Virus record (IMG/VR): IMGVR_UViG_3300033984_000473
Span: 168,932-232,931 of that record
Reading direction: 5' to 3' (one strand)
DNA: 64,000 bases
Positions 1 through 52,094 of this stretch are shown piece after piece (the stretch's first letter is position 1; each line of letters starts with the position of its first letter). A program made the position numbers and the translations under genes. The notes below the pieces were generated by a model that had not been told where the DNA came from, did no database searches, and saw only the letters and a list, made by a program, of their open reading frames with translations.

Positions 1-216
1 AACTCGATACAACGCTATCAAATACCACACATAAAATGGTAAGATTCCCAGCTCCAATTGCTGCATTAAATGAATCTTTTCGTGATTTATTAGCTCTGGA
101 TATATATCACTTGCATCACCTATAAATATGAAGGGAAAGAAAGCTAACCCTCTTATCCCCTCACTATTCAATACCCATTCAAAGAATCGAATGGCTCTTC
201 TACTTACTACTATCAT
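1..216 (-). CDS. HExxH (zincin-like) protein, 3' end outside the window
   Basis: Manual translation MIVVSRRAIRFFEW...INHEKIHLMQQLELGILPFYVWYL, open to the window edge. Confidence 0.7.
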   Translation of the reverse strand, partial: MIVVSRRAIRFFEWVLNSEGIRGLAFFPFIFIGDASDIYPELINHEKIHLMQQLELGILPFYVWYLIALYRV

Positions 217-1037
217 TATGATTTAAGTAGCAATTCTTTCATGTCTTTTACCAACTCTCTATGTCCACTACCATATGGTTCCCACGCCAACCCCATTGCT
301 TTAAGGTCGTAGTGTTTAACTATCGTTGAATACGATGTTTCACCTTCTGGAAACCCAACAATATAAATACTATCAGCCAATTCAGCAGCAAGTCTTAAAT
401 CGTGTGTCGAAAAAATAATCGTATTGTATTCATTGCTTTTACCAATTCTAACAAATGATTCTTTCACTTTTTCGATGTTACCAACATCCAACCCAGAGAA
501 CGGTTCATCCAAAATCATAAAGTGTTTAGATGAAAGCATTTGCTCAATGATTGCAGTTCTTTGTCTTTGACCACCAGATAATTCACAAGAATATTTGTCT
601 TTGTGTTCCAACAATCCCCAATCAGTTAGATACTCTTTAATCTGAGCCTCTTTTTCAGCCTTTGTAAGCGTTGATTTTCTCAAAGCATACTCACAAATCT
701 GTGTGATGGTTTTGTGTCTAAAAAGGGTGTATTTTTGGTCTACAAACCCTATGTCGCCCTCTGACAAGTTCTTTGCATCGTCAGCAACATCGGTAGTTAA
801 GTCACTAATAAGCATTTGACCACTTAATGGCTTCAATAAACCAGTTAGTGTTTTGAATAAGGTAGATTTACCTCTACCAGAACGACCAATAAAAGCAATT
901 ACTTGCCCAGTTGATTCATGTCCTTGTCTTATGATGTCTTTTTCTTCAAAAGAAACATCTTTAAGGATTGTTTTTCCATCGTAACCAGCACTTAGGTCTT
1001 TAACGTATAATAACGTTTGTTCAGCTTTATAACTCAT
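216..1037 (-). CDS. ABC transporter ATP-binding subunit (TauB/SsuB-like)
   Basis: Walker A GRSGRGKST, LSGGQRQR signature, Walker B ILDEPF, H-loop STHD. Confidence 0.95.
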   Translation of the reverse strand: MSYKAEQTLLYVKDLSAGYDGKTILKDVSFEEKDIIRQGHESTGQVIAFIGRSGRGKSTLFKTLTGLLKPLSGQMLISDLTTDVADDAKNLSEGDIGFVDQKYTLFRHKTITQICEYALRKSTLTKAEKEAQIKEYLTDWGLLEHKDKYSCELSGGQRQRTAIIEQMLSSKHFMILDEPFSGLDVGNIEKVKESFVRIGKSNEYNTIIFSTHDLRLAAELADSIYIVGFPEGETSYSTIVKHYDLKAMGLAWEPYGSGHRELVKDMKELLLKS

Positions 1038-1040
1038 AGT

Positions 1041-1811
1041 TTAGTAATTTGAATATCTAAAGATTAATTTTCTTAATTTTGTGATAATGAAGTCTAAGGT
1101 TAAACCTACAACTACGATTATGATTTGCAATGCGATTACTTTACCAGCATCACCTAACTTATCATTGTTCTTGATAAGGAATCCAAGTCCACCAGCGGCC
1201 ACAAGGATAGATTCAACGGTTACAAGCATCATCCATACGATTGCCAAGTTTTGTCTAACCAACTCAAATACGTAGTCAATACGACCTTTGATTACAACTT
1301 CCCATAAACATTCCCATCTGCTGCAACCTAATGTCCTAGCGTGGTCGAATTCTTCTTCTGGAATATCTTTAATCATTTGCATAAGACTTGTGGTTAAGAA
1401 TGTTGTCATAAAAACAACAAGAACCCAGACTTGAAGTGTTCTAGCATCATTGATAAGAATTGCAATGTAAAATGCGATACCAGTCAAAGGTAGATATCTA
1501 AGCTTAGATATGAATGTACCAACTGGTTTAAAGAAAGGAATTGCAGATGAATAAGCAAACATAAGTGAAATCACGATGGAAATCATTACAGCTTGACTAC
1601 ATAACCAAATTGAACTTGCAATGTGAACGACCAACCCATCGGCCCAAAGGTCTTTTAACCCATGCAATACTTGTAGTGGTGTTGGGAAAAGGTGAGTATC
1701 ACCAAAACTGTTAAGTCCCCAAAACGTTAATAGAATTACTAACCATGATGTCAGTATTGTCGTTTTACTAGAACCTTTAAGATTCTCAAACGGTTTAAAT
1801 AATCTTTTCAT
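1041..1811 (-). CDS. ABC transporter permease (TauC/SsuC-like)
   Basis: Multiple TM segments, EAA-like loop DHARTLGCSR, GGLGFLI motif; adjacent to the ATPase. Confidence 0.9.
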   Translation of the reverse strand: MKRLFKPFENLKGSSKTTILTSWLVILLTFWGLNSFGDTHLFPTPLQVLHGLKDLWADGLVVHIASSIWLCSQAVMISIVISLMFAYSSAIPFFKPVGTFISKLRYLPLTGIAFYIAILINDARTLQVWVLVVFMTTFLTTSLMQMIKDIPEEEFDHARTLGCSRWECLWEVVIKGRIDYVFELVRQNLAIVWMMLVTVESILVAAGGLGFLIKNNDKLGDAGKVIALQIIIVVVGLTLDFIITKLRKLIFRYSNY

Positions 1812-2138
1812 TTAATCTTTTTTAAGTGTTAATTTATATGCTTCTCGGTCTTTAATCATTTTTTGTCTAAGTGCTTCCAAATCCACTTCTTTCTTTTTGG
1901 CTCTTGTAGAACCTTTAAAAGGTGTTCTTTCGATGATTGTGATTTGACGTTCAACTTTTACAATTGTTCTCATGCCATTCTTATCACCACATCTTTCTAA
2001 GATATCGGTAACACCATCAATAGTTTTGTAAGCTTTTGCTTTTAACTCATTATGAGTATAAGAAAATTCATAGTTTGGTTGCTCATCAGCATAAAAACCT
2101 TTATTTTCTACATGTCCTAAAAATCTAGTTTCTTTCAT
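1812..2138 (-). CDS. hypothetical protein
   Basis: 108-aa ORF with TACCTTTG promoter upstream. Confidence 0.6.
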   Translation of the reverse strand: MKETRFLGHVENKGFYADEQPNYEFSYTHNELKAKAYKTIDGVTDILERCGDKNGMRTIVKVERQITIIERTPFKGSTRAKKKEVDLEALRQKMIKDREAYKLTLKKD

Positions 2139-2259
2139 TTTTAAGTGTTTTATAATTTCTACCTAACAAAGGTACAACTAATATTTTATATAACCAAATA
2201 TTTTACATAAAAAAAATCCCTAACTATGTGTTAAGGATTTTTGTAAGTTTATGTTTCTG

Positions 2260-4074
2260 TTAGTTTAACAAAGTGATTTCCACTCGTCTGTTTTTAGCTT
2301 TACCACTAGCAGTGTTGTTATTAGCTACTGGGTTAGTATCACCTTTACCATCAACCAATTGGAAACGGTCTTTAGAAATACCTCTACCAGTTAAGTAATT
2401 TACTACTGAATTAGCACGACCTTTAGATAATGATAAGTTAGAATCAGAGTTACCAACGTTATCTGTGTGACCAACAATTCTCAATTTGGTTTGTTCAGCT
2501 TGTACTAGTAAGTTGTAGATTGCTTCTAAATCTTTTTCAGAACCAGCGATTTCTGAACTACCTGTTGCAAAGCTAATGTTCCATTGACCATCAGCCAATA
2601 CTTTAGTTTTAGTGTCAGTATAAGTTATTTTATCAGCTTTACCAGAAGCAACATCAGTTACCGATTTCAAGAAGTATAAATTAACCGCATCTTCGTAAGG
2701 TACAACACCATCTTTACATGTTTCATTAAAACCACATGGGTTCAAGTCAGTCAAGTAAACCGATACTTGGTTATAAACCGCTTTGTATCTGTTGTTACCA
2801 TCTGTGATTCCGTAGTATTGCATTGCATCAGCATAGTTAAACACTTTTGAACCACCGATATTGTAATCTAAACCATCTTTGGTACCTTTTTGACCTTTGA
2901 ATAAATCATACCAGTATTTAGGTGTTTCAAAGTCATATGTTTTAGCAACACATTCAGATGCTTTAACAGCCCACTCATCATATTGTTTGATTTGATTAGA
3001 AGCAGTATATGTTTGTTTCAATATATTAACAACTTCTTTCTCATGTTGCAATGCCCATTCTTTAATAACAACTAGTGTTGTTGCCATTTGGTTAACAAAT
3101 TCTTTAGTTGAAACTACATCGGTGAAACCACTCAAAGCATCGAAAGCCATTTTATCACCAGGAGTCCATGTAGTTGCCCCATCAATTTTGTGGTTAACTG
3201 TTTTACCAGTTAATTTACCATTCTCAACCACTTTTAAAGGAACAGTATAACCTGTTTTTTGTGACTTGATAAGTTCTTTCACAGAGTTGATGTAGTCATC
3301 GTCTTGTGATGGTACGAAGTTAATCGCATTAGCATCATAAGTACTTGGGTCTGGATTCACTGGAATCTTATTAGCAAAAGCATAGTTGATTGCAACAACC
3401 CAGTCACCATCACCGATTACAGAAGATATTACAGCACCTTTCATTGATTGTGGATTATCTTTCCAGATTTTTGGTCCGATTAATTTATCTTCACCATATG
3501 AAAGACCGTAAGCACCAATTACTTGTACGTGGTATTTACCTTTACCAAATTTTTCATCCAAAGCTTTTTGTGTAGTCGTAATATAGAACGGCACACCGTC
3601 ACCCATAATACTTACACCAAACGCTGATTTATCTGATACTGGATATTGAGCACCCTTAGAGAATTCCTCAACGAATTTTAATTGCATATCACGTAACCCA
3701 CCGACCATGTCTTGTCTTACGATTTCTAAGTTAACACCAGAAGCTTCCATAAGAGAACCTTGAGTTGTACGTGGACCACCGTTAGCCACAATCATACCAG
3801 CGTTACCATTCCATGCATATTCTGCAATACGGATAAGACCTTTGTTTGCTACAGCTGTTGATGGCTGATTAGACGGAGTTGGTAGCTTGGCACCACTCGT
3901 TACGTTGTTCAATTCATCAGTATTGATACTTAATGAAGTTAATTGCTTTGAAACAGCAACTCGTAATCCAGGTGATACGAAATAAACGATTCCTAATACG
4001 ATTGCTAGACCTAATGCTAAGATTGTCCCCTCAGCTAAGGTAGTTAATTTTGGTTGTTTGAAGATTGCTCCCAT
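2260..4074 (-). CDS. membrane-anchored substrate-binding protein fused to a C-terminal OmpA-like domain
   Basis: N-terminal TM helix; SBP-like core; OmpA_C motifs GHTDNVG, LSKGRA, NRRVEI. Confidence 0.85.
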   Translation of the reverse strand: MGAIFKQPKLTTLAEGTILALGLAIVLGIVYFVSPGLRVAVSKQLTSLSINTDELNNVTSGAKLPTPSNQPSTAVANKGLIRIAEYAWNGNAGMIVANGGPRTTQGSLMEASGVNLEIVRQDMVGGLRDMQLKFVEEFSKGAQYPVSDKSAFGVSIMGDGVPFYITTTQKALDEKFGKGKYHVQVIGAYGLSYGEDKLIGPKIWKDNPQSMKGAVISSVIGDGDWVVAINYAFANKIPVNPDPSTYDANAINFVPSQDDDYINSVKELIKSQKTGYTVPLKVVENGKLTGKTVNHKIDGATTWTPGDKMAFDALSGFTDVVSTKEFVNQMATTLVVIKEWALQHEKEVVNILKQTYTASNQIKQYDEWAVKASECVAKTYDFETPKYWYDLFKGQKGTKDGLDYNIGGSKVFNYADAMQYYGITDGNNRYKAVYNQVSVYLTDLNPCGFNETCKDGVVPYEDAVNLYFLKSVTDVASGKADKITYTDTKTKVLADGQWNISFATGSSEIAGSEKDLEAIYNLLVQAEQTKLRIVGHTDNVGNSDSNLSLSKGRANSVVNYLTGRGISKDRFQLVDGKGDTNPVANNNTASGKAKNRRVEITLLN

Positions 4075-7060: not shown

Positions 7061-7180
7061 TGTACAAAGAGTAGGATTCGAACCTACGTAACTCCCTACG
7101 TCATGCTTCCAAACTGAAAAGGAATCGAACCTTACACACGAATTCAAGGGGGAGTGCTTTACCACTAAGCTATCTCCGTA
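7061..7180 (-). ncRNA. tRNA-like RNA with ~53-nt expanded anticodon loop
   Basis: Acceptor, D arm (GCTT AGTGGTA AAGC), CTCCC/GGGAG stem and T arm GTAGG TTCGAAT CCTAC; the loop holds a second T-arm-like hairpin. Confidence 0.6.
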
Positions 7181-7268: not shown

Positions 7269-7415
7269 TAGACAACAAGATTAACTTTTTTCTTTTTCGT
7301 GCTCTAACCATTAAGCTAACCGCCCAGTGTCTTAGGACAGTATGGGACTCGAACCCATATCACGAGCTTAACAGGCTATAGATTTTTTGTTGCTGAAATA
7401 ATCTTTCAATGTCTA
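7269..7415 (-). ncRNA. circularly permuted tRNA-Asn mimic (Y RNA/YrlA-like; CWGCAA family E1)
   Basis: Order: AAGATTA-TTTCAGCAA, GC-CTGTTAA-GC anticodon hairpin, T arm, acceptor 3' strand, 9-nt linker, acceptor 5' strand, D arm, TAATCTT. Confidence 0.7.
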
Positions 7416-9024: not shown

Positions 9025-9197
9025 TATGTTCTACTTTTTAGAACTTCAATTTCTTTGTTGATTCTTTTGATATCAGAATCATTCAAAGGAACTTTAACGT
9101 CAGTTGTTTTCTTTTGTGTTTTCACACCACTTTTTAATTGCTTCTCAAGCATTTCGATTACTCTAGACTGTCTAGAACGTTTTGCAGCTGTTGCCAT
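9024..9197 (-). CDS. small basic protein (57 aa)
   Basis: MATAAKRSRQSRVIEMLEKQ...VLKSRT; stop overlaps the next start. Confidence 0.6.
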   Translation of the reverse strand: MATAAKRSRQSRVIEMLEKQLKSGVKTQKKTTDVKVPLNDSDIKRINKEIEVLKSRT

Positions 9198-9214
9198 AGT
9201 TAAATTTATTTATT

Positions 9215-9322
9215 TGTAGATGGTACAGGATTCGAACCTGTGAATCTCTTTGTATAGGTATCATACATACCACATCAAGACTTTATGTATGCTCAACCTT
9301 AAGCCACTCGGTCAACCGTCTA
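9215..9322 (-). ncRNA. atypical tRNA-like RNA (class II-like D arm, enlarged anticodon arm)
   Basis: T arm ACAGG TTCGAAT CCTGT; D loop GAGTGGCTTAA; CATAC/GTATG stem encloses a 16-nt loop. Confidence 0.5.
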
Positions 9323-11305: not shown

Positions 11306-11380
11306 TGTTGAGGAAGAGGGACTTGAACCCTACTCTACCACCCGTCTAGGTGGTCTTCTAACCAGTTAAAGTATTCCCCA
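11306..11380 (-). ncRNA. degenerate tRNA-like gene with 6-nt anticodon loop
   Basis: Cloverleaf with CCACC-TAGACG-GGTGG; anticodon not assignable. Confidence 0.5.
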
Positions 11381-11467: not shown

Positions 11468-11588
11468 TGCAGCGGCACCAGGAATCGAACCTAGAACAAT
11501 GGCGTGACAGGCTATATTGAATGCTGAACGTAATCTTCTTAATCAGATTAACTTTTTTAACATTGTTATACCATTTAACTATACCGCT
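11468..11588 (-). ncRNA. tRNA-Asp(GTC)-like RNA with inserted CWGCAA-family module (E2)
   Basis: Normal acceptor, D and T arms, G73; anticodon arm carries AAAAAAGTTAATCT..AAGATTACGTTCAGCA..TATAGC CTGTCAC GC. Confidence 0.7.
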
Positions 11589-13823: not shown

Positions 13824-13876
13824 TGTTTATTTTTTTTACAAAGGTACAATTAAAAAATGACAATAGCAAATATATT

Positions 13877-13962
13877 TGTGACCAAGGTGAGACTCGAACT
13901 CACACTCCCTAATGGGAACCAGCTTCTTAGACTGGCGGGTCTACCAATTCCCCCACTCGGCC
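13877..13962 (-). tRNA. tRNA-Leu(AAG)
   Basis: Class II cloverleaf, loop CTAAGAA. Confidence 0.9.
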
Positions 13963-13968
13963 AAATAC

Positions 13969-14048
13969 AAGATAGTTTTGTGGGATTGAACCACTTAGTT
14001 TTGTGTATGAGACAAAATTTTAACCGTTTTGTTTGCAGTAACTATCTT
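13969..14048 (-). ncRNA. CWGCAA-family tRNA mimic with CAT anticodon arm (E3)
   Basis: AAGATAGTT/AACTATCTT stem replaces the acceptor; TTACTGCAA; TTTTGT-CTCATAC-ACAAAA; T arm GTGG TTCAATC CCAC. Confidence 0.7.
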
Positions 14049-14052
14049 TTAG

Positions 14053-14127
14053 TACATCTTGTAGGATTCGAACCTACGACTTCCACCTTGTAAGGATGGC
14101 ACTCTGAACCAACTGAGTTAAAGATGC
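14053..14127 (-). tRNA. tRNA-Val(TAC)
   Basis: Loop CTTACAA. Confidence 0.93.
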
Positions 14128-17062: not shown

Positions 17063-18274
17063 TTAAATGTTAGTTGCCGAGATTGGCAAGTTATAGAAAT
17101 CTCTTCTTATTGTTACTAAAAGTGCATCTACTAATCCTGGGTTTACCTTGTTTGGTAAATCAGATTTATCAAATACCTCGTCCATATTTGCTATGGCTTC
17201 ATCGGCCATGACAATCAACCCATCTAAATCAACTTCACCACGTCTAATCTTAAGAAGTTCTTCAGCATCTGGTCGTCTAACGATGATACCTTTACCTTCT
17301 CCGATTTCTGTAGCCATATTGATAAGTCGCATACAATGCATCATGTTCTTACCATCAATCTTTTGACCATGACCTTGAACTTCAACGTATCTGGTTACAT
17401 TTCTTTTATCTAACCATTCTTGGTATTCTTTAAAGTCTTTACAGTGCTCTGAATAACCATCTTTGTTATAAACGATTGTACTGATTGTTTTTTCACCTTT
17501 AGGAATACTAGAAAGACGTAGTTGATTTGAGATACCATAGTTAATGACCCCATCTTCATCTTCATGACCAGTGTTTACAAGTCCTTTATATCCAAGACCC
17601 ATTGGCTTACCAGCATCTTTTAGAACAGCCTTTCTTTGGTTGCGTTCTACTTCTGAAAATTTATCAGAGTGACACATTTCACCAACACTGTCATAAAATA
17701 AAGCATACGTATCCCTAGCGTTAGGTATGTTTACAGCACCTATGAATTTTTCATCGTACTTCCCAGAGTTCCATATTTTCCATGGAATTGATTTCTCACC
17801 TTCAAGTACATAACAGAAATCCAATAGGTCTTTACGAACTACTTTGTCCTGTTCCCAGTTTTGTTTCTTGTTAAGTCCTTTGGCTTTTTTGATTTGCTGT
17901 CTAGCGTAACCACCGAAAGAATCTTTACACGCTTTGGTGATGAAATCTTCCTTGTGAGCAATGATAATGTCAAACAAAGGGTTCTTTGTGACGATACAAT
18001 CTTCTGGACTGTTAAGGAGCTCAAGAACAGTTGGGTTGTTTGTACTCATAAGTTCTAAGAACCTTTTAAGTTCCCAACCCGTCCAATCTTTATTGATATT
18101 CAACTGTTCAACATATCCAGTACCCAAGATATTATCAATAGGCAAGATGTAAACGAATTTTTTATCCACATCAGACGTTGGTGTCTGCGTACCATAGGCT
18201 TGACTACCAATAATGCATTCAAAAAGAATCAATCCATTCTCTTTAAGGTAATCGTATGTAATTTTCTGTGTCAT
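17063..18274 (-). CDS. Pol-beta superfamily nucleotidyltransferase (YcgL/RlaP-like)
   Basis: GSQAYG..SDVD, NPTVLE, KNMMHCMRL. Confidence 0.85.
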   Translation of the reverse strand: MTQKITYDYLKENGLILFECIIGSQAYGTQTPTSDVDKKFVYILPIDNILGTGYVEQLNINKDWTGWELKRFLELMSTNNPTVLELLNSPEDCIVTKNPLFDIIIAHKEDFITKACKDSFGGYARQQIKKAKGLNKKQNWEQDKVVRKDLLDFCYVLEGEKSIPWKIWNSGKYDEKFIGAVNIPNARDTYALFYDSVGEMCHSDKFSEVERNQRKAVLKDAGKPMGLGYKGLVNTGHEDEDGVINYGISNQLRLSSIPKGEKTISTIVYNKDGYSEHCKDFKEYQEWLDKRNVTRYVEVQGHGQKIDGKNMMHCMRLINMATEIGEGKGIIVRRPDAEELLKIRRGEVDLDGLIVMADEAIANMDEVFDKSDLPNKVNPGLVDALLVTIRRDFYNLPISATNI

Positions 18275-18357
18275 ATTCTTAATTTTTAACAAAGGTATGT
18301 ATAATTTATTAAACTACCAAACATTTTTACATTTTAATTCCAGTAAGATAGATAAAT

Positions 18358-19116
18358 TTACTTAAATTTACGTTCTACTTCCATCCTCTTTAAACATTCG
18401 AAAGGTGTTTCGTTGGGGTTAAGTGTATAATTACATCCAATAACACCACCCTTCCAACTACCAGTTCTTTCACCAACTTCTTCATTAAAGTTTATCTCAA
18501 TAACATGTCTAGTTTTAATTTGTAAACCAAACCATCTCTTCCAATATCTTTTAACTTGATGAATCGTTGCTTTTATATTTTGAATGTCGCCAGAATTTAA
18601 TTGATAAGCATAATCATGCACTTCATATAATATTTTATCGGACCATTTATCTGAATCCCAAAAATCATCACCTTTTTCTTCTTTTTTCCAACCATCTTTA
18701 AGTAAGTATTCAGTTTTTAAATGGTTATACGCCCATGGAAAATCAAATGATAGTTTATGGAAACCTCTAACCCAAAATTGGTTTGGAAATCCACTGTCAA
18801 TATGGTAAAACATAAGACCATATGTTTTTGATTCAGAAGTATTACCTCTACCAGTATCATACGGTAAATGAATATATAAATTACCCCAAGAATAAAAACA
18901 TAATATCAACGATATCGGTATTAACCATAAACTAATGAATGGTAACACTAATAAAAGTAACGTTGTTAAATTAGTGTTAATTTGTGGTCTAGGGTCGAAA
19001 TAACCATTATTTTCATATGTTAAATAGAAACCATTACCTTTACTACTTTTAGGATAAAAAGACACCCATTTTTGGTAATCTTCAGTATCTGCATTTGTGA
19101 ACTTAAATTTTATCAT
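18358..19116 (-). CDS. hypothetical membrane protein
   Basis: 252-aa ORF with one hydrophobic segment; own promoter. Confidence 0.7.
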   Translation of the reverse strand: MIKFKFTNADTEDYQKWVSFYPKSSKGNGFYLTYENNGYFDPRPQINTNLTTLLLLVLPFISLWLIPISLILCFYSWGNLYIHLPYDTGRGNTSESKTYGLMFYHIDSGFPNQFWVRGFHKLSFDFPWAYNHLKTEYLLKDGWKKEEKGDDFWDSDKWSDKILYEVHDYAYQLNSGDIQNIKATIHQVKRYWKRWFGLQIKTRHVIEINFNEEVGERTGSWKGGVIGCNYTLNPNETPFECLKRMEVERKFK

Positions 19117-23330: not shown

Positions 23331-24623
23331 TTAATTTCCTATCTCAACCAAATGAGATACAGTACATTGTGAAGAATTATACACGATGTATTCGTTATTT
23401 TTTAAATCAGCACCACCTTTGGCAAATACAGAATCATAATCATCTTTTTTCAAGGCTGTGTGTGATAATGAATAACAACTAGAAGTATGATGAAGGATTT
23501 CCTTTTGATTACCCAAATGTACATCAAACAATGCTAAGAAAGCTTTATCATCACCACCTTTGGTCCAATAAGAACCTCTCAATGATGAATAACCGATTGA
23601 TTTCTGAGCTTTATCGGCAAAATAGATTCCATCTCCAAACATAGAACCAGTATGAACTGCACCAGAAGGTCTGATAAGTAACCCAGTTTGTAAAATGTTA
23701 AACCAGTTCTCATTTCTAGAACCATGCCAGTAAAGTCTTCTTTTCTTAACCTTAGCAGTTTCATAGTTCTTATCAAATATTTTTTGGGTTTTATTATTAA
23801 CCACCTTGAATACTCTTTTGACTTGATGTGCGTTAGGTCCCATAAGTTTCGTAACCAAAGCAAGTGTTTCTTTATCTTCCTCAACTTCAACACTAAGACC
23901 CATTTGGTCAAGTATAGTAACTTGGTCAACATGTTCTTCTTCTGGAGCTTCAGCTATTGCTTTTTGTTGTTTAAGTAGTTGTACTTGTCCAGCCATTGTA
24001 TCTAGTGTAGATTGTTCTTGACCAATGAATTTCTGAGCATTTTCAAGTGCTTTGGCATCATTAATTTCGTTTACAAGGTAATCACGTACATTATCCATTC
24101 TTCTAGGGATAATTGTATATAATTTAAGTAACATATCATTAACCAATTTCTTATCCACATCTAGAACCATGATAGCACTAATTCTATCTATGATTTCTTG
24201 GGCGGCAAGTACTTGTTGCTCAGATACAGCATCTTGCGTTACTTTATAATTTCTTTGAATAGATTTGTTTGCAAATGACATTAATTCATCGATAAGCTTT
24301 TTAACAGCTGAGTTTTTGATTTCTTCAGTTTTTTGTGCAGTCGCTGCTTTGGTTGCATCGTCAATAACTGGTTCTGCTAGGAATTCAGTTACATCAGTAT
24401 AACCTTTTTTATCAGAAGTTTTCTCTCTAAGGATTTTATCCCATTCATGTCTAGATTTGAATACTGTAGTCATATTTTTACCTACTCTACCATATTCACA
24501 TTGTATTCTACCATCGGAAAGTTCTTCCATGATATAAACCTTGTTACTATTGTCGGTCATTCCGTTATCAATAGAAACATGTACTAATTTAGCGTATCTT
24601 AAACCGTTTTCTTTTGTTATCAT
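23331..24623 (-). CDS. poly(ADP-ribose) polymerase (WGR + regulatory + catalytic domains)
   Basis: YGRVG, LYTIIP, WHGSR, MFGDGIYFAD..KS.GY, NEYIVY (H-Y-E triad). Confidence 0.9.
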   Translation of the reverse strand: MITKENGLRYAKLVHVSIDNGMTDNSNKVYIMEELSDGRIQCEYGRVGKNMTTVFKSRHEWDKILREKTSDKKGYTDVTEFLAEPVIDDATKAATAQKTEEIKNSAVKKLIDELMSFANKSIQRNYKVTQDAVSEQQVLAAQEIIDRISAIMVLDVDKKLVNDMLLKLYTIIPRRMDNVRDYLVNEINDAKALENAQKFIGQEQSTLDTMAGQVQLLKQQKAIAEAPEEEHVDQVTILDQMGLSVEVEEDKETLALVTKLMGPNAHQVKRVFKVVNNKTQKIFDKNYETAKVKKRRLYWHGSRNENWFNILQTGLLIRPSGAVHTGSMFGDGIYFADKAQKSIGYSSLRGSYWTKGGDDKAFLALFDVHLGNQKEILHHTSSCYSLSHTALKKDDYDSVFAKGGADLKNNEYIVYNSSQCTVSHLVEIGN

Positions 24624-25026: not shown

Positions 25027-26082
25027 TTAAGCTAACTTAAAGAACATTTCTCTTACCTTTGATGAAACGTATTTGTTTACATCTTTAGGTTCAATATTAT
25101 TGGCTACCATAGTATCCATTTCTTCTTTGGTAATGTCAGTTACAACCCATCTAATAACATCACCCATCTTTTTAACATCGATTGGTTCGTCATTTGGGAA
25201 TACATTTTCAAGTGATTGATTGAAACGACTTTCAGTAACTGCATACTCAACAAATTTTTGGATAGAACCCAATTTCTCAACATCAACACTCGCTAGAGTT
25301 TTAACCTTAGAGCTAGAGTGCTTTTCACCCTTAACCTTAAATCTATGAACGATACCGTTTACATTGGTTGACCAAACAATACCCTCACCGATTCCAGAGA
25401 ACCCAAAAGCTTTCGCTACAGGACATTCTTCTTCAACTGCGATAGTTAACTCGGATAATTGGTTTTGAATCAATTGAGGCATGTTAAAATCGATATCGAT
25501 AGAGAACGTTGGGAAATCATCAATATTGTAGATGTTATCATCTGGAGACTTTAAATAATGGTAAGGAATCCAGAACGCTGGTTTTAATCTAGCTTCTTCT
25601 TCACTATAGGTGATAGGTGAAACCTTAACACCAAATATAAAGAATGATTTAGGTAAATTACAAATACCAACACCTTTTTGAATGTTACCACCACACCATT
25701 CACCATAAATCGTAACGATGTTATTTCTAGCATCAAATAAATTAAACGAATTTATCTGGTTAGCAAATTTTTTAAACGCTTCTTTATGTGATTCAACAAA
25801 GAAAGCAAACCCAGCATTGTCTTTTTCTATTGTAATGATGTTCTCACGTGATTGTGCCCAGTATTCACTTTGTGATTGGTCATAACCATAGTTAAAAGAT
25901 ACAGCAGCATTGGTTCCGTGTAATTTCACAGTACCTTTAAACGTAAGCACTGGCTTAGGAAGATTTGGGTCATAAATAGCATCACCATTCTCATCTAACC
26001 CGATGTAGTTGTAATGTCTATTTATGTTCGTCACGACAGTTCTAAACTGTTCAATTGACGGGAATTTAATCATTTTTTTCAT
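25027..26082 (-). CDS. RNA ligase (Rnl2-like)
   Basis: KLHGTN motif I, YGEW, GEGIVW, FKVK. Confidence 0.85.
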   Translation of the reverse strand: MKKMIKFPSIEQFRTVVTNINRHYNYIGLDENGDAIYDPNLPKPVLTFKGTVKLHGTNAAVSFNYGYDQSQSEYWAQSRENIITIEKDNAGFAFFVESHKEAFKKFANQINSFNLFDARNNIVTIYGEWCGGNIQKGVGICNLPKSFFIFGVKVSPITYSEEEARLKPAFWIPYHYLKSPDDNIYNIDDFPTFSIDIDFNMPQLIQNQLSELTIAVEEECPVAKAFGFSGIGEGIVWSTNVNGIVHRFKVKGEKHSSSKVKTLASVDVEKLGSIQKFVEYAVTESRFNQSLENVFPNDEPIDVKKMGDVIRWVVTDITKEEMDTMVANNIEPKDVNKYVSSKVREMFFKLA

Positions 26083-26877: not shown

Positions 26878-28374
26878 TTATTTTGCTTTTAGCGTTTTAG
26901 CCATATTTTCAATTTCAATACATGATTCAAGTGTATCACATGTATCTTTGTCAGTTCTTAACTCAACAATCGATGGATGTTGTGTTGACCAACCCTTGTC
27001 AGTTTCTGAAAGACCACAACATCTAATTTGCACAACAGTACCCATTAGTTCGTCTTGTCTAGCAGTAACATCAGCCATCATAGCTTCAGTCATTCCACCA
27101 GGAGCAGTCTTCAATTTACCACACTCACTTTCCAATTGCAATACTGATATTACGTTCTCATTCTTGGTACCTTTGGCACCATAATTGAATCCGATGATTC
27201 TTAAATCCATATCCATCTCAAGTTTCATCTTGATTTGGTATGTTGGTTTACCATCCTTCCAACCAGCAGAAGCTTGTTTGATTATAGTTCCTTCTAGACC
27301 TCTATTTTGAGTATCCATGAAGTGTTCCATCGCTTCCTCATAAGTTCTAATGAATCTTGTTTCGATAAGGTCAACTTGGTCATGACTTTGCCCTTCAAGT
27401 CTTTTTCTAAGTGTGTTGTATCTTTCGTGGTATTCAGTGTCAGATTTAAAAGCGAAATACTCATCAACGCTAATCATATCCCAAACTGTAAATCTTAACT
27501 TATCCAAAGCATCAGCCATCGGCCCATGTTTATCTTCAAATGCTGCAACTTTCTTCGCAGTTTCAACTTCACCTCTTTCGTCAGCTTTCTCAACGATATC
27601 CATGATAGAGTTTACCATACCATTGGCAATTGTTCTTTTAACACCATCAATCGTTAACTCGCCATTAAGCACACAATCTTCCAATTGAGATAGTTCTTCT
27701 AAAAATTTGGCACCAGTAAGTGTAGATACTTCACCTTGTCTAGAAATCAATTCAACTTCACCACTTCTTATGATGGCGTTACGATATGTTCCATCAGCTT
27801 TCACTTGTGACATAACCGCTTTACCTTTCTCGAATAACTTAATAGCACCTTTCTCAGAGAATGACTTAGCACCTTGATATGGAGTTTCTTCAATCAATTT
27901 GGGTATAACTTTGTTGATTCCAGAATCCATTCCGATTTTAAGGTTCTTATCTATGATACGCTCAATAACATAAGCATCGTCAGCATCTAAATAAGATAAG
28001 ATATTTAATAAGAAATCGGTAGCTGAAGCACCAGTATAAGTTCTATCAGAAAGACGAGTCAATTCTTCTATCGATTCTGCTAATGTTAGTGTTGTTTCAA
28101 CATTAGAGTATTGTGGAATCTGTTTGATATAGAATTTGATTCTAGGTGAATGAGCCAAATAGATTACTCTTTTTAACAACTCATTATCTTTGTATTTTGA
28201 TAAGACTTTTATCTTATCATTTTTACCACCAACAGCAGCAATTTCATCAAGGATGTTTTTGATTGTCATTTTTGGGTGTTTTTTTTGGTACTCAGCTTTA
28301 GCTTTTTCCATGTTTTTCATTTCGAATTCGTGTATAGAAGCTTCTGCTCTATCGTTTTTCCAATCTTCACTCAT
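26878..28374 (-). CDS. lig: ATP-dependent DNA ligase
   Basis: KADG motif I, LNGEL, EGTIIK, KMK, OB fold. Confidence 0.9.
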   Translation of the reverse strand: MSEDWKNDRAEASIHEFEMKNMEKAKAEYQKKHPKMTIKNILDEIAAVGGKNDKIKVLSKYKDNELLKRVIYLAHSPRIKFYIKQIPQYSNVETTLTLAESIEELTRLSDRTYTGASATDFLLNILSYLDADDAYVIERIIDKNLKIGMDSGINKVIPKLIEETPYQGAKSFSEKGAIKLFEKGKAVMSQVKADGTYRNAIIRSGEVELISRQGEVSTLTGAKFLEELSQLEDCVLNGELTIDGVKRTIANGMVNSIMDIVEKADERGEVETAKKVAAFEDKHGPMADALDKLRFTVWDMISVDEYFAFKSDTEYHERYNTLRKRLEGQSHDQVDLIETRFIRTYEEAMEHFMDTQNRGLEGTIIKQASAGWKDGKPTYQIKMKLEMDMDLRIIGFNYGAKGTKNENVISVLQLESECGKLKTAPGGMTEAMMADVTARQDELMGTVVQIRCCGLSETDKGWSTQHPSIVELRTDKDTCDTLESCIEIENMAKTLKAK

Positions 28375-28379
28375 AATTT

Positions 28380-28544
28380 TTATTTTGTTGTTAAATAATA
28401 AAACCCAACTACTATAATTCCTAGTATGATTACAGTTGCAATAAGGCAACCACAACCACGTTTGTCATTTTTAGATTCTGAAGCGGTTTCAACCCCAGCT
28501 TCAATCACACCTACTATTAGTTCTCCGATTATTTCGTGTGGCAT
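28380..28544 (-). CDS. small membrane protein (54 aa)
   Basis: MPHEIIGEL..GCGCLIATVIILGIIVVGFYYL; promoter upstream. Confidence 0.55.
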   Translation of the reverse strand: MPHEIIGELIVGVIEAGVETASESKNDKRGCGCLIATVIILGIIVVGFYYLTTK

Positions 28545-31323: not shown

Positions 31324-32448
31324 TTAAAGCATTTTATATAATAATTTATCATCGTATTTAAACATAAATGTTTCAACCGATTCTACTTTTCCTTCAGCCA
31401 ATCCAAAATACAATCCTGTGAATTGTTTTAAGTCTTGTTTACCACATACTTCAAACACAGCTTCGGCATATTTCTTTTTTTCAGATGCCATTATGTTTTT
31501 TGGTTTACGTAGTTTCAACTCATCCCACAATACATTCAATTTTACAACCAAAGCATCGTAAGATTCTTTTAACTTATAAAGTTCCTCTTTTCTTTCTGGA
31601 AAGGTTGAGGCGAATTCTTCTATCTCATTGGTTTTAACGATTGTAAGTATGTTGTGTTCAGCAGTTTTACCTTTTAAGTGGTGAACTGCCAAGTAAGCTG
31701 GGTTTTTTATCTTAACACGGTTAAAATTAGCATCCACAACAACGTAACCTTCTTCCGACCATGGCATACCTTCAAATGTACGTAACAAAGCACCCACATC
31801 TTTGGCATTCAAATCAAACTTTTTAACCAATGGCAGTCCCAATGATATAGCAGCCATTTCTAAGTCTTTTCCAGATAATTCTTCTAGAGTTTCTCTGTTT
31901 CTGATTGTAAGGATAGTAGCTGATGATTCACCGTGTGGTTTAACCACTATATTGTATGGAGTAGTTAACTCGAATACGTATATATGGTTTTTATCTAGTA
32001 AACAATCGTTGAAACCGTACTTGTTATTCACAGTATCCCAGAATAGGTCATTAAATGTAGTACCCATCTTGTTATTTACCTCTCCTTCACCCTCTGCTGT
32101 ACCAGTAGTACCAGCAAACCATGTTTTTTTGTTCCAATCCCAGTATGCTTGTATAAGAGTACCATCTAATTTCTCTAGAACACTAGCAGTATTCCAGTCA
32201 ATCTTAGCAGCGTTACCCTCTTGTGAGTTAAAAAACTTTCTAAAAGCCAATGACATTACCTTCCATGTATCCATTTCAAGTATAAGACCACGAGAATCTT
32301 GCATTTCTGGCAACGCCATAAGTGTTGGCGACACTAATTGGTCATATTTTAAAAGTATTTTACCGTCATACTCTCTAAATTTCAATTTAAAGTCTGATAT
32401 TGTTTTTGATATCCCGTTTTTTCTGATATATTCTTGTATTGCTAACAT
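31324..32448 (-). CDS. RNA ligase (T4 Rnl1-like)
   Basis: RGLIL..FRKFFN..EKLDGT, FEL, EGYVV, KIK..Y. Confidence 0.9.
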   Translation of the reverse strand: MLAIQEYIRKNGISKTISDFKLKFREYDGKILLKYDQLVSPTLMALPEMQDSRGLILEMDTWKVMSLAFRKFFNSQEGNAAKIDWNTASVLEKLDGTLIQAYWDWNKKTWFAGTTGTAEGEGEVNNKMGTTFNDLFWDTVNNKYGFNDCLLDKNHIYVFELTTPYNIVVKPHGESSATILTIRNRETLEELSGKDLEMAAISLGLPLVKKFDLNAKDVGALLRTFEGMPWSEEGYVVVDANFNRVKIKNPAYLAVHHLKGKTAEHNILTIVKTNEIEEFASTFPERKEELYKLKESYDALVVKLNVLWDELKLRKPKNIMASEKKKYAEAVFEVCGKQDLKQFTGLYFGLAEGKVESVETFMFKYDDKLLYKML

Positions 32449-45368: not shown

Positions 45369-46529
45369 TTATTTGTTTAATAATTGTTTAAAGTTTTCAG
45401 TTTCCATTTGTTGAATCCTTTGACCCAACTCTGGTCCAGGTTTTAAGTCTGTATCCATCATTACTTCTGGTCCCGTAACTGTTAACTGAAACTTTAAGAA
45501 TGCGTCTAATAACTTAGAGTCAATTCCACGCAATTTGCCAAACATTTTAATCTGCTCTGGAGTTACACCAGCGTGCTTCTCAGCTTTTTTAAGTGTTACA
45601 GCTGTATCTACTGATAATTGTAACAAAGCAATTAAAAATGTTATTGCTTTTACTTCTTCTGCTGAGTATTTCAAGTTGTTTAGTTGTTTTCTCAAAGAAT
45701 CTAAGTTGTTTCTTTTCAATATCGTAGCAATTACGATTATTGGGTCGTTATTCTCAACAAAATCCTTATCAACTGCCAATCCATTGAAAACCCAGTCGAA
45801 CAATTTGTAACCATCAATCATTTGTAAGAATTTCTTAACCGATTTTGCCGAAGCAATACCTTTAAGGAATTCATCACGAATTCTCTCACCAGAAATACCC
45901 TCAAGACTAGCATCTTTAACCAACGCAGCGTGTGTATCTGGGTCTAAGTCACTTCCGAACCTTCCAGCAAATCTAATCGCTCTAAGGATACGCAAACGGT
46001 CTTCACCAAATCTATCTTCAGCAGCACCTACAGTTCTTACTATACCTTTTTTAAGGTCATCTACACCACCAACTAGGTCAACTATTTCATGTGTATCAAT
46101 ATCGTAAAACAAAGCGTTAATTGTAAGGTCACGTCTTTTAACATCACCAGCGATATCCGTAAAGCTAACAGCATCTGGTCGTCTACCACCAGACAAATCT
46201 TCACGGAATGTTGCCACTTCGTATTCGCCTTGGTCTGTAAACACATTGATTACACCAAAAGACTTACCTGTTGGTAAAGTTTTCAATCCAGCGTGTTTCA
46301 TCATTTCTTCTACTTTGTCTGGGACAGCATCGGTTGCTAAGTCGTAATCTTTAGGAGTTTTACCTAACAAAGCATCACGCACAGCACCACCTACAACATA
46401 CAACTTAAAACCGTTCGTTTTAAAAACGTCTTTGATTCCTTGTATATCTTCTGGGATTGGAATATCGAATTTGATTCGCTGTTCCATTATCTGCCCTTCT
46501 CTTAGTATTTGTCTAATCTCATTTTTCAT
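45369..46529 (-). CDS. cca: CCA-adding tRNA nucleotidyltransferase
   Basis: VGGAVRD..KDYD, RRDLTINA, EDRLRILRAIRF, ERIRDE. Confidence 0.92.
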   Translation of the reverse strand: MKNEIRQILREGQIMEQRIKFDIPIPEDIQGIKDVFKTNGFKLYVVGGAVRDALLGKTPKDYDLATDAVPDKVEEMMKHAGLKTLPTGKSFGVINVFTDQGEYEVATFREDLSGGRRPDAVSFTDIAGDVKRRDLTINALFYDIDTHEIVDLVGGVDDLKKGIVRTVGAAEDRFGEDRLRILRAIRFAGRFGSDLDPDTHAALVKDASLEGISGERIRDEFLKGIASAKSVKKFLQMIDGYKLFDWVFNGLAVDKDFVENNDPIIVIATILKRNNLDSLRKQLNNLKYSAEEVKAITFLIALLQLSVDTAVTLKKAEKHAGVTPEQIKMFGKLRGIDSKLLDAFLKFQLTVTGPEVMMDTDLKPGPELGQRIQQMETENFKQLLNK

Positions 46530-49166: not shown

Positions 49167-49241
49167 TGTAGTTCTAGTCGGACTCGAACCGACATTTCTC
49201 CGTTTTAGAGGCGGGCGTATTCACGTTAATACTATAGAACC
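49167..49241 (-). tRNA. amber suppressor-type tRNA (CTA)
   Basis: Loop CTCTAAA; anticodon stem has two C-A mismatches; D loop lacks GG; own promoter at ~49252. Confidence 0.75.
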
Positions 49242-51820: not shown

Positions 51821-51883
51821 AGAATAGCATGGTTTTTCTTTTTTTTCGTTAAATAGATTTTTTTAAATTGCTGTAACTATTCT
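51821..51883 (-). ncRNA. CWGCAA-family small RNA (E4)
   Basis: AGAATAG-TTACAGCAA...CTATTCT. Confidence 0.55.
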
Positions 51884-52046: not shown

Positions 52047-52094
52047 AGAATCAATTTTTTTCCTATATAAAGAGTTAATTGCTGCAATGATTCT
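52047..52094 (-). ncRNA. CWGCAA-family small RNA (E5)
   Basis: AGAATCA-TTGCAGCAA...TGATTCT. Confidence 0.55.

Follow-up and report, generated by a model that had tools for sequence, protein, structure and literature searches.

A conserved small structured RNA lies in the tRNA operon of the viral genome analyzed here, and it is probably a Y-RNA-type partner of the Ro60-like DUF2828 protein that the same genome encodes, which makes it a candidate for binding by that protein. We read it in this way because it has the layout of the D. radiodurans Y RNA Yrn1 and because the structural frame on which it is built, referred to below as the chassis, is tied to DUF2828 genes; this reading combines sequence comparison, a predicted protein structure, and analogy with described Y RNAs. 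That the element is a real, conserved small structured RNA is an observation, and the evidence for it is given first.

Genomic setting of the element

The window, i.e., the whole stretch of 64,000 nt that was analyzed, makes up the final 64 kb of a 232,931-bp IMG/VR viral record (IMGVR_UViG_3300033984_000473) that has ~34% G+C and is estimated to be 64% complete. The minus strand carries nearly all of the genes and at least 31 tRNA genes (31 were called by ARAGORN), and three ordinary tRNA-Met(cat) genes are present. This stretch is found mostly in DNA runs from lake, river, and other freshwater metagenomes, with some from wastewater and estuaries. Genes for RNA repair and counter-defense are also present, encoding RlaP, two RNA ligases, an ATP-dependent DNA ligase, a CCA-adding enzyme, a PARP-like protein, and Acb3, which is a CBASS inhibitor (Table 1).

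Several other features of the minus strand were observed. ARAGORN called a “tRNA-Pyl” at 49168-49241, the anticodon of which (CTA) is of the amber-suppressor type and prompts the question whether TAG is read through or recoded in the phage or the host. A tRNA call with a four-base anticodon (agac), and hence an enlarged anticodon loop, is located at 11307-11380, and a type-II-tRNA-like sequence that no tRNA finder called (9200-9320) has a 7-bp stem and a 16-nt loop in place of the anticodon arm. The region from 216 to 4074 contains genes for the ATPase and permease of an ABC transporter and for a 604-aa OmpA-domain protein, here in a phage genome.

The element exactly fills the gap of 89 to 90 nt between tRNA-Val(tac) and tRNA-Leu(aag), and all three are on the minus strand. 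No terminator-like site was found between the flanking tRNAs and the element. The ends of the full RNA were predicted from RNase Z and RNase P rules, under which an RNase Z-type cut after tRNA-Val and an RNase P cut before tRNA-Leu would release it. Stable non-tRNA RNAs in a phage tRNA gene cluster are exemplified by species 1 and 2 of phage T4 (rnaC and rnaD), which are cotranscribed with the phage tRNAs and matured by tRNA-processing enzymes, as we propose for the element; T4 is not known to have a DUF2828 protein. Metatranscriptome contigs from four runs (contigs only) touch neighboring genes and tRNAs, and none of them spans the element. A plus-strand open reading frame (ORF) of 78 aa (13857-14093) was dismissed because it overlaps three RNA genes on the opposite strand. 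No relatives were found for the two small flanking proteins, of 74 and 95 aa. In a BLASTN comparison with cultured phages, only the flanking tRNAs were matched, and two megaphage records (L002 and L003) have only tRNAs in common with the window.

Architecture of the element

The element measures 80 nt from helix to helix, and its parts follow one another in the order helix, D remnant, anticodon-like arm, T arm, helix (Table 1). A blind helix script returned it at exactly 13969-14048, and the covariance model described below matches 13963-14051 with 103.2 bits. The single-sequence fold is modestly better than that of shuffles (z = -2.26). A 4-nt connector separates the anticodon-like arm from the T arm, and the linker between the T stem and the terminal helix is 2 nt in the window copy and ranges from 0 to 11 nt across homologues. 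The G of the 3' tail is invariant, and the remainder of the tail is variable and U-rich.

The preliminary description had named a D-loop remnant, a CTCATAC loop, and a T arm, and folding located all three on the minus strand where it had placed them. It had also mounted these parts on a “CWGCAA helix” standing in place of an acceptor stem, which holds in part. The helix is present, but CWGCAA itself is single stranded and directly follows the 5' strand of the helix on its 3' side. Likewise, the helix takes the topological place of an acceptor stem, but it has 9 bp, has no discriminator/CCA end, and is separated from the T stem by a linker.

Table 1. Positions of the element, its parts, its relatives, and associated genes in the window
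Feature	Position	Strand	Remarks
Predicted full RNA	13963..14052	minus	From the 3' end of tRNA-Val(tac) to the 5' end of tRNA-Leu(aag)
Terminal helix, 5' strand AAGAUAGUU	14040..14048	minus	Fold and helix script
Terminal helix, 3' strand AACUAUCUU	13969..13977	minus	Pairs with AAGAUAGUU, 9 bp
Single-stranded motif ACUGCAA	14033..14039	minus	Follows the 5' strand of the helix
D-loop remnant GGUUAAAA	14018..14025	minus	
Possible 3-bp mini-helix	14031-14033 with 14022-14024	minus	Weakly supported
Anticodon-like arm	13999..14017	minus	6-bp stem UUUUGU/ACAAAA, 7-nt loop CUCAUAC
Loop CUCAUAC	14005-14011	minus	
Triplet CAU	14007-14009	minus	
T arm	13980..13994	minus	GUGG-UUCAAUC-CCAC
3' tail GUAUUU	13963..13968	minus	Ends where tRNA-Leu begins
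tRNA-Val(tac)	14053..14127	minus	Immediately upstream of the element
tRNA-Leu(aag)	13878..13962	minus	Immediately downstream of the element
YrlA-topology member	7277..7405	minus	Helix AAGAUUA/UAAUCUU and UUUCAGCAA
tRNA-body member, 119 nt	11470..11588	minus	Capped chassis hairpin and CAGCA replace the anticodon loop
Short chassis RNA	51821..51883	minus	AGAAUAG/CUAUUCU and UUACAGCAA; directly 3' of tRNA-Met
Short chassis RNA	52047..52094	minus	AGAAUCA/UGAUUCU and UUGCAGCAA; directly 5' of tRNA-Gln
DUF2828 + DUF7788 protein, 478 aa	59124..60560	minus	Pfam
RNA repair and counter-defense genes	17063-18292, 18358-19116, 23331-24623, 25027-26082, 26878-28455, 31324-32448, 45369-46529		

Conservation among homologues

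With the nearby RlaP protein as the query, 35 related viral loci were retrieved. Syntenic homologues of the element are found in 11 related loci (8 distinct sequences), where the covariance model, which was built from these homologues, scores 91 to 105 bits; genuine tRNAs reach at most 31 bits. A degenerate pattern scan together with the covariance model found diverged members in unrelated contigs (35 to 74 bits), and an exact-pattern scan of viral contigs for a CAU loop plus the T loop gave no matches.

Each syntenic homologue exactly fills the gap between two tRNAs, and in all 11 loci the next gene is a tRNA-Leu (aag; tag in L010). This regularity, together with the two other chassis RNAs of the window that also abut tRNAs, is what might be expected if the element were a cis-acting structured spacer, with the helix and CAGCAA guiding or insulating the processing of the neighboring tRNAs and the RNA having no role of its own after release. 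However, other phages carry the same type of RNA and its relatives in tandem arrays beside DUF2828 genes, with tRNAs on neither side, and a spacer would have no need for a conserved T arm, a D-loop GG, and an anticodon-like arm. We regard a mere spacer as quite improbable.

An alignment of 21 sequences was fitted to the covariance model, and 94.4% of the cells in its helices are paired, compared with 68% in shuffles and 34 to 49% when partners are slid. Changes on both sides were found in 16 of the 22 pairs, including 7 of the 9 in the terminal helix (96.8% of cells paired), all 6 in the anticodon-like stem, and 2 of the 4 in the T stem, where the outer pairs covary. For the possible mini-helix, 85.7% of the cells are paired and there is one compensatory pair. 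An independent MAFFT alignment of nine close sequences has 96.4% pairing and seven compensatory pairs, and none of 500 shuffles was as good. All four helices include G-U pairs, which indicates that the RNA is read from the minus strand.

The near-invariant parts of the homologue alignment are WCAGCAA, GGWUAAAA, GGUUCAAnnCC, and the G after the helix. The 20 other aligned homologues have WCAGCAA and the window copy alone has CUGCAA, and thus the putative protein-binding motif is altered in this genome. GGTTCAAnnCC is invariant in 20 of the 21 homologues; in the remaining one (L058:290-409) it reads GGTTCGAATCC, and the D arm is fuller, with the AAACGGTTAA loop unchanged. This RNA and L097:5672-5802, both on the minus strand, are chassis RNAs with a nearly complete tRNA interior and a full D arm, and ARAGORN calls one of the two tRNA-Ile. 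In appearance, they are intermediate between an ordinary tRNA and the element's reduced head.

A decaying, functionless tRNA pseudogene left behind in the array would be located among tRNA genes, would have recognizable tRNA parts, and would be accepted by no tRNA detector, all of which applies to the element. However, compensatory substitutions keep its helices intact in phages that have diverged widely, and a motif that tRNAs lack is conserved; this covariation and this motif strongly disfavor a pseudogene, which we consider very improbable.

Comparison with tRNAs

The element shares with tRNAs (RF00005) a canonical T arm, the D-loop GG, a 7-nt loop with U in second position, and a location in a tRNA array. 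It differs from them in having no D stem (at best a weak 3-bp D-like helix), extended junctions, including a conserved one of 7 nt, and a 9-bp terminal helix; its triplet is variable, whereas the anticodon of a tRNA would be conserved among orthologues. In a tRNA, by comparison, the acceptor stem has 7 bp and stacks directly on the T stem, and 2 nt lead to a D stem of 3 to 4 bp. The tail GUAUUU provides no discriminator/CCA context at the 3' end. The Rfam tRNA model (RF00005; gathering threshold, 29 bits) had no match on 13963-14051 at E values of up to 10, and ARAGORN left the element uncalled. The earlier view of a tRNA-like RNA that is nevertheless no tRNA is upheld.

By the same token, it is scarcely credible that the element is a working, if aberrant, tRNA decoding AUG/AUA with the anticodon CAU. 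Such a tRNA would account for the 7-nt loop with U33 and CAU and for the canonical T arm. However, both detectors are silent (RF00005 at E values of up to 10), a 7-nt junction replaces nucleotides 8-9, the 9-bp helix is joined to the T stem by a linker of 0 to 11 nt, the D stem and the discriminator/CCA context are lacking, the triplet differs in orthologues, and the window already has its three ordinary tRNA-Met(cat) genes.

The anticodon-like triplet

The loops of nine syntenic orthologues are CUCAUAC, CUUACAC, CUCAUAA, CUCAAAA, CUGCAAA, UUAAUCA, and, three times, CUUAAAA. The corresponding triplets are CAU, UAC, CAU, CAA, GCA, AAU, and UAA, and distant members have UAU, UGA, GUA, CUA, GAA, and others. 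The mean pairwise difference is 0.54 in the triplet columns, compared with 0.17 in the other unpaired columns and 0.19 in the paired ones. These columns are the most variable of the alignment, approximately three times more so than the rest of the RNA, while the loop form Y-U-NNN-A-N is kept in most homologues. The CAU anticodon, which the preliminary description had the element display, is thus not conserved even among close syntenic orthologues. The associated proposal of a decoy for nucleases that cut Met tRNAs, such as VapC, finds no comparative support because the triplet varies among orthologues.

More generally, the anticodon-like arm could act as a decoy or bait that is cut or bound by host tRNA-targeting nucleases, sparing the real tRNAs. 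The tRNA-like 7-nt form of the loop in most homologues, the large set of RNA repair and counter-defense genes in this phage, and the rate of change of the triplet, which is the highest in the RNA and is what an arms race would be expected to produce, are all in line with bait. However, an absence of constraint would explain the fast change of the triplet equally well, and a bait explains neither the conserved chassis nor the many members of the family that have no tRNA-like head. A single copy per genome would also make a weak stoichiometric decoy. Triplets as diverse as CAU, UAC, CAA, GCA, AAU, and UAA among close orthologues contain nothing that indicates Met or VapC, and the bait reading, including this specific form of it, is unlikely.

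The chassis RNA family in the window

The chassis was defined as a 5'/3' terminal helix of 7 to 9 bp in which the 5' strand is followed by 1 to 4 nt and CAGCAA and the 3' strand by an invariant G, located on the same strand as the neighboring genes. The element has all of these, with CUGCAA as its one deviation. A whole-genome helix-plus-motif scan recovered the element, at exactly the coordinates first given for it, along with relatives on the same strand. CWGCAA alone is barely enriched in the window (69 occurrences, compared with 55 expected), and several of its matches are coding or due to chance, e.g., 9182-9187 within a short ORF; the family is therefore defined only by the helix and the motif together.

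Four other members are located in the window (Table 1), and one further member lies just upstream of it. The interior of the RNA at 7277-7405 is a circularly permuted tRNA-like domain consisting of a T arm, an acceptor-like hairpin, and a D arm. For this RNA, CAACAA/TTGTTG was rejected as the closing helix; AAGATTA/TAATCTT closes it. The two short chassis RNAs have A-rich interiors and no tRNA-like head. Rfam tRNA matches of 117 to 119 nt are found on the minus strand at 7063-7179 and 11470-11588; the insertion in the former differs from that in the latter by having its own T-arm-like hairpin inside.

The preliminary description had counted the element as a third topology of a helix-plus-CWGCAA family, and this agrees with our results, in that the RNAs at 7277-7405 and 11470-11588 display other permutations. 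The three topologies are permutations of one design, in which a chassis (terminal helix, CAGCAA, and 3' G) carries a variable head.

The DUF2828 protein and its link to chassis RNAs

The DUF2828 protein encoded in the window carries a DVSGS MIDAS motif. Its AlphaFold2 model, which is of moderate confidence (pLDDT, 70), has the HEAT-repeat ring and the von Willebrand factor A (vWA) domain with MIDAS that characterize Ro60/TROVE proteins. The 13 best PDB matches of the model in Foldseek are without exception Ro60/TROVE proteins, with full-length alignments and a probability of 1.00. They include Thermus phage phiLo Ro60, which is the best structural match, D. radiodurans Rsr, and the Xenopus and human Ro60 proteins (E values of 8e-10 to 5e-5). 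A sequence-only search of the PDB gave TROVE matches at an E value of 1.1 only, the Pfam TROVE model has no match to the protein, and no other TROVE gene was found in the genome. Judging from the model, the protein is a divergent Ro60 homologue with a full-length Ro60/TROVE-vWA ring; a Ro60-like fold that the Pfam TROVE model does not match points to a divergent branch of Ro60.

DUF2828 is encoded in 12 of the 16 viral records that contain the element's type of RNA and in all five of those that are at least 90% complete. The four records without it are fragments estimated to be 6 to 24% complete, and none of 15 control records has DUF2828. In three separate records (G005, G007, and G011), an element-type RNA directly precedes the DUF2828 ORF on the same strand and belongs to a tandem array of four to nine chassis RNAs at this gene. 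The genome analyzed here has its DUF2828 gene 45 kb from the element.

Homologues of DUF2828 were found in 711 cultured phage records, and chassis RNAs flank the gene in all eight cultured phage lineages examined: four in Felixounavirus Alf5, one in Vibrio ValKK3, three each in Mycobacterium Kingsolomon, Listeria LMTA-34, and Staphylococcus 6ec, two in Campylobacter PC5, approximately five in Klebsiella KP2025, and one, along with two long “tRNAs,” in Cronobacter S13. A chassis scan over 10 loci yielded 37 RNAs, compared with 4.7 expected from shuffles. The DUF2828-type gene of Kingsolomon is annotated as encoding a “Ro-like RNA binding protein” and stands beside three tandem chassis RNAs, the middle one of which carries ACAGCAA and is matched by the Rfam YrlA model (37.9 bits; E value, 5e-5). 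A covariance model of the element's own topology found only ordinary tRNAs in eight cultured DUF2828 phage genomes. Overall, adjacency of gene and RNA in the genomes of many phages strongly backs a link to DUF2828, although co-occurrence could partly result from both features traveling with tRNA clusters.

Three of the cultured phages have further features of their own. The chassis AAAGACAU...ACAGCAA of Vibrio phage ValKK3 (L163; 3964-4089) begins ~37 nt upstream of the start codon of DUF2828. The 3' strand of this chassis would fall inside the DUF2828 ORF, and the chassis may be a site at which the DUF2828 protein autoregulates its own mRNA. Adjoining the DUF2828 gene of Cronobacter phage S13 (L164; 5896-6138) are a 121-nt “tRNA-Ser” and a 113-nt “tRNA-OTHER,” both of which consist of a tRNA body into which a capped chassis hairpin has been inserted where the anticodon would be and are probably misannotated. 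Listeria phage LMTA-34 (L166; 5850-7061) has its chassis RNAs upstream of the DUF2828 gene and an RtcB-type “tRNA-splicing ligase” gene 1.3 kb downstream, an arrangement that echoes the bacterial rsr-yrlBA-rtcBA operon.

Comparison with described Y RNAs

Y RNAs are 80 to 130 nt long and have a 5'/3' terminal stem that carries the Ro60-binding site. More than 250 bacteria and phages encode such RNAs next to a Ro60 gene, and many of these RNAs contain tRNA-like domains (PMC4201824). The element has this size and a 5'/3' stem enclosing an internal module, and genomic association with a Ro60 homologue is found at the level of its family.

Among described Y RNAs, D. radiodurans Yrn1, the partner of the Ro60 orthologue Rsr, provides the model for the element's topology. 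A T arm, an anticodon-like arm, and features of a D loop, though no full D arm, have been described in Yrn1, and together with the terminal stem, these parts follow in the same order in the element (PMC4201824). The likeness rests on the described layout, and the loop has 6 nt in Yrn1 and 7 nt in the element. Furthermore, the motif is of the GNCGAA type in Yrn1 and is (A)CWGCAA in the element, and Yrn1 is encoded by the host next to rsr, whereas the element is a phage RNA in a tRNA operon at a distance of 45 kb from the Ro-like gene.

YrlA RNAs (Salmonella, Mycobacterium smegmatis, and mycobacteriophages) resemble the element in that a tRNA-like module is set on a terminal stem and in their association with Ro60 genes. 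However, YrlA is circularly permuted relative to the element, with the T and D arms flanking an acceptor-like hairpin and the open end at the anticodon side, and the arm order of the element is Yrn1-like. YrlA RNAs have a GNCGAAN0-1G motif near the 5' end (PMC4201824), where the element reads AAGAUAGUU-ACUGCAA. The Rfam YrlA model (RF02553; gathering threshold, 69 bits) had no match on the element at E values of up to 10. The counterpart of YrlA in the window is instead the RNA at 7277-7405, which is a different RNA from the element, and the mycobacteriophage RNA matched by the YrlA model has the helix-plus-ACAGCAA chassis beside a DUF2828-type gene, as in the element's family. Permissive Rfam searches assigned no family to the element or to the chassis arrays; weak matches (MIR8041, CyVA-1, Dicty Class I, and others) were rejected as noise.

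Among phages, phiLo encodes two Y-like RNAs upstream of its own Ro60 (PMC12135203), and a role as platforms for RNA repair, with a tRNA-like partner, has been pointed out for the ROT/TROVE proteins of jumbo phages (PMC7824862). Like the chassis RNAs, the phiLo RNAs Yrl1 and Yrl2, which have been described with the phage Ro60 (PDB 9KOP and 9L5Y), have a short conserved motif in a loop that is flanked by a 5'-3' stem. The motif is CGAA in phiLo and CAGCAA in the chassis RNAs, no tRNA-like head has been described for Yrl1 and Yrl2, whereas the element has one, and phiLo Ro60 is 17 to 18% identical to the DUF2828 protein of the window. The difference between CAGCAA/CUGCAA and the GNCGAA/CGAA of described Y RNAs counts against reading the element as a Y RNA, as do the silence of the YrlA model, the altered motif of the window copy, the 45 kb between the element and the DUF2828 gene, and the metatranscriptome contigs, none of which spans the element.

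If the Y-RNA-type reading is correct, the chassis (terminal helix, (A)CWGCAA, and 3' G) would be the site at which the Ro60-like DUF2828 protein binds. The head is a reduced tRNA, connected as in Yrn1, in which a GG remnant of the D loop and an anticodon-like arm are followed by a canonical T arm. By mimicking the elbow and the anticodon arm of a tRNA, it could allow the ribonucleoprotein to engage a tRNA-recognizing factor, for which tRNA processing, modification, or repair enzymes, or a nuclease, are candidates.

Implications

Ro60-Y RNA particles are conserved from bacteria to humans, and tRNA-mimicking Y RNAs, including phage ones, are already known. The CAGCAA chassis, the tandem arrays, and the three permuted topologies were not found in Rfam or in the literature searched; neither a partnership with the DUF2828 branch of Ro60 across many phage lineages nor a Yrn1-like version embedded in a tRNA operon was found in these sources, and literature searches on DUF2828 and ACAGCAA returned nothing relevant.

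A bolder and doubtful extension is that the Ro60-like particle displays the anticodon arm as a fast-evolving bait and is a programmable ribonucleoprotein for tRNA surveillance or counter-defense. If so, the chassis would anchor the RNA on the DUF2828 protein, and the triplet of the head would switch between lineages (CAU, UAC, CAA, GCA, UAA, UGA, GUA, CUA, and others). The head would then either attract whichever anticodon nuclease of the host confronts the phage or recruit the phage ligase, RlaP, and CCA-adding repair enzymes to cleaved tRNAs.

The chassis family explains both some odd annotations, such as “tRNAs” of 113 to 121 nt, and unassigned gaps in phage tRNA clusters. It represents a modular RNA family in which heads in three circular permutations are interchangeable on a single chassis that probably binds protein. 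DUF2828 phages include tractable ones of E. coli, Salmonella, Listeria, Staphylococcus, Mycobacterium, Vibrio, and Campylobacter, and since tractable cultured phages carry the family, binding, processing, and tRNA mimicry can be tested in laboratory phage-host pairs.
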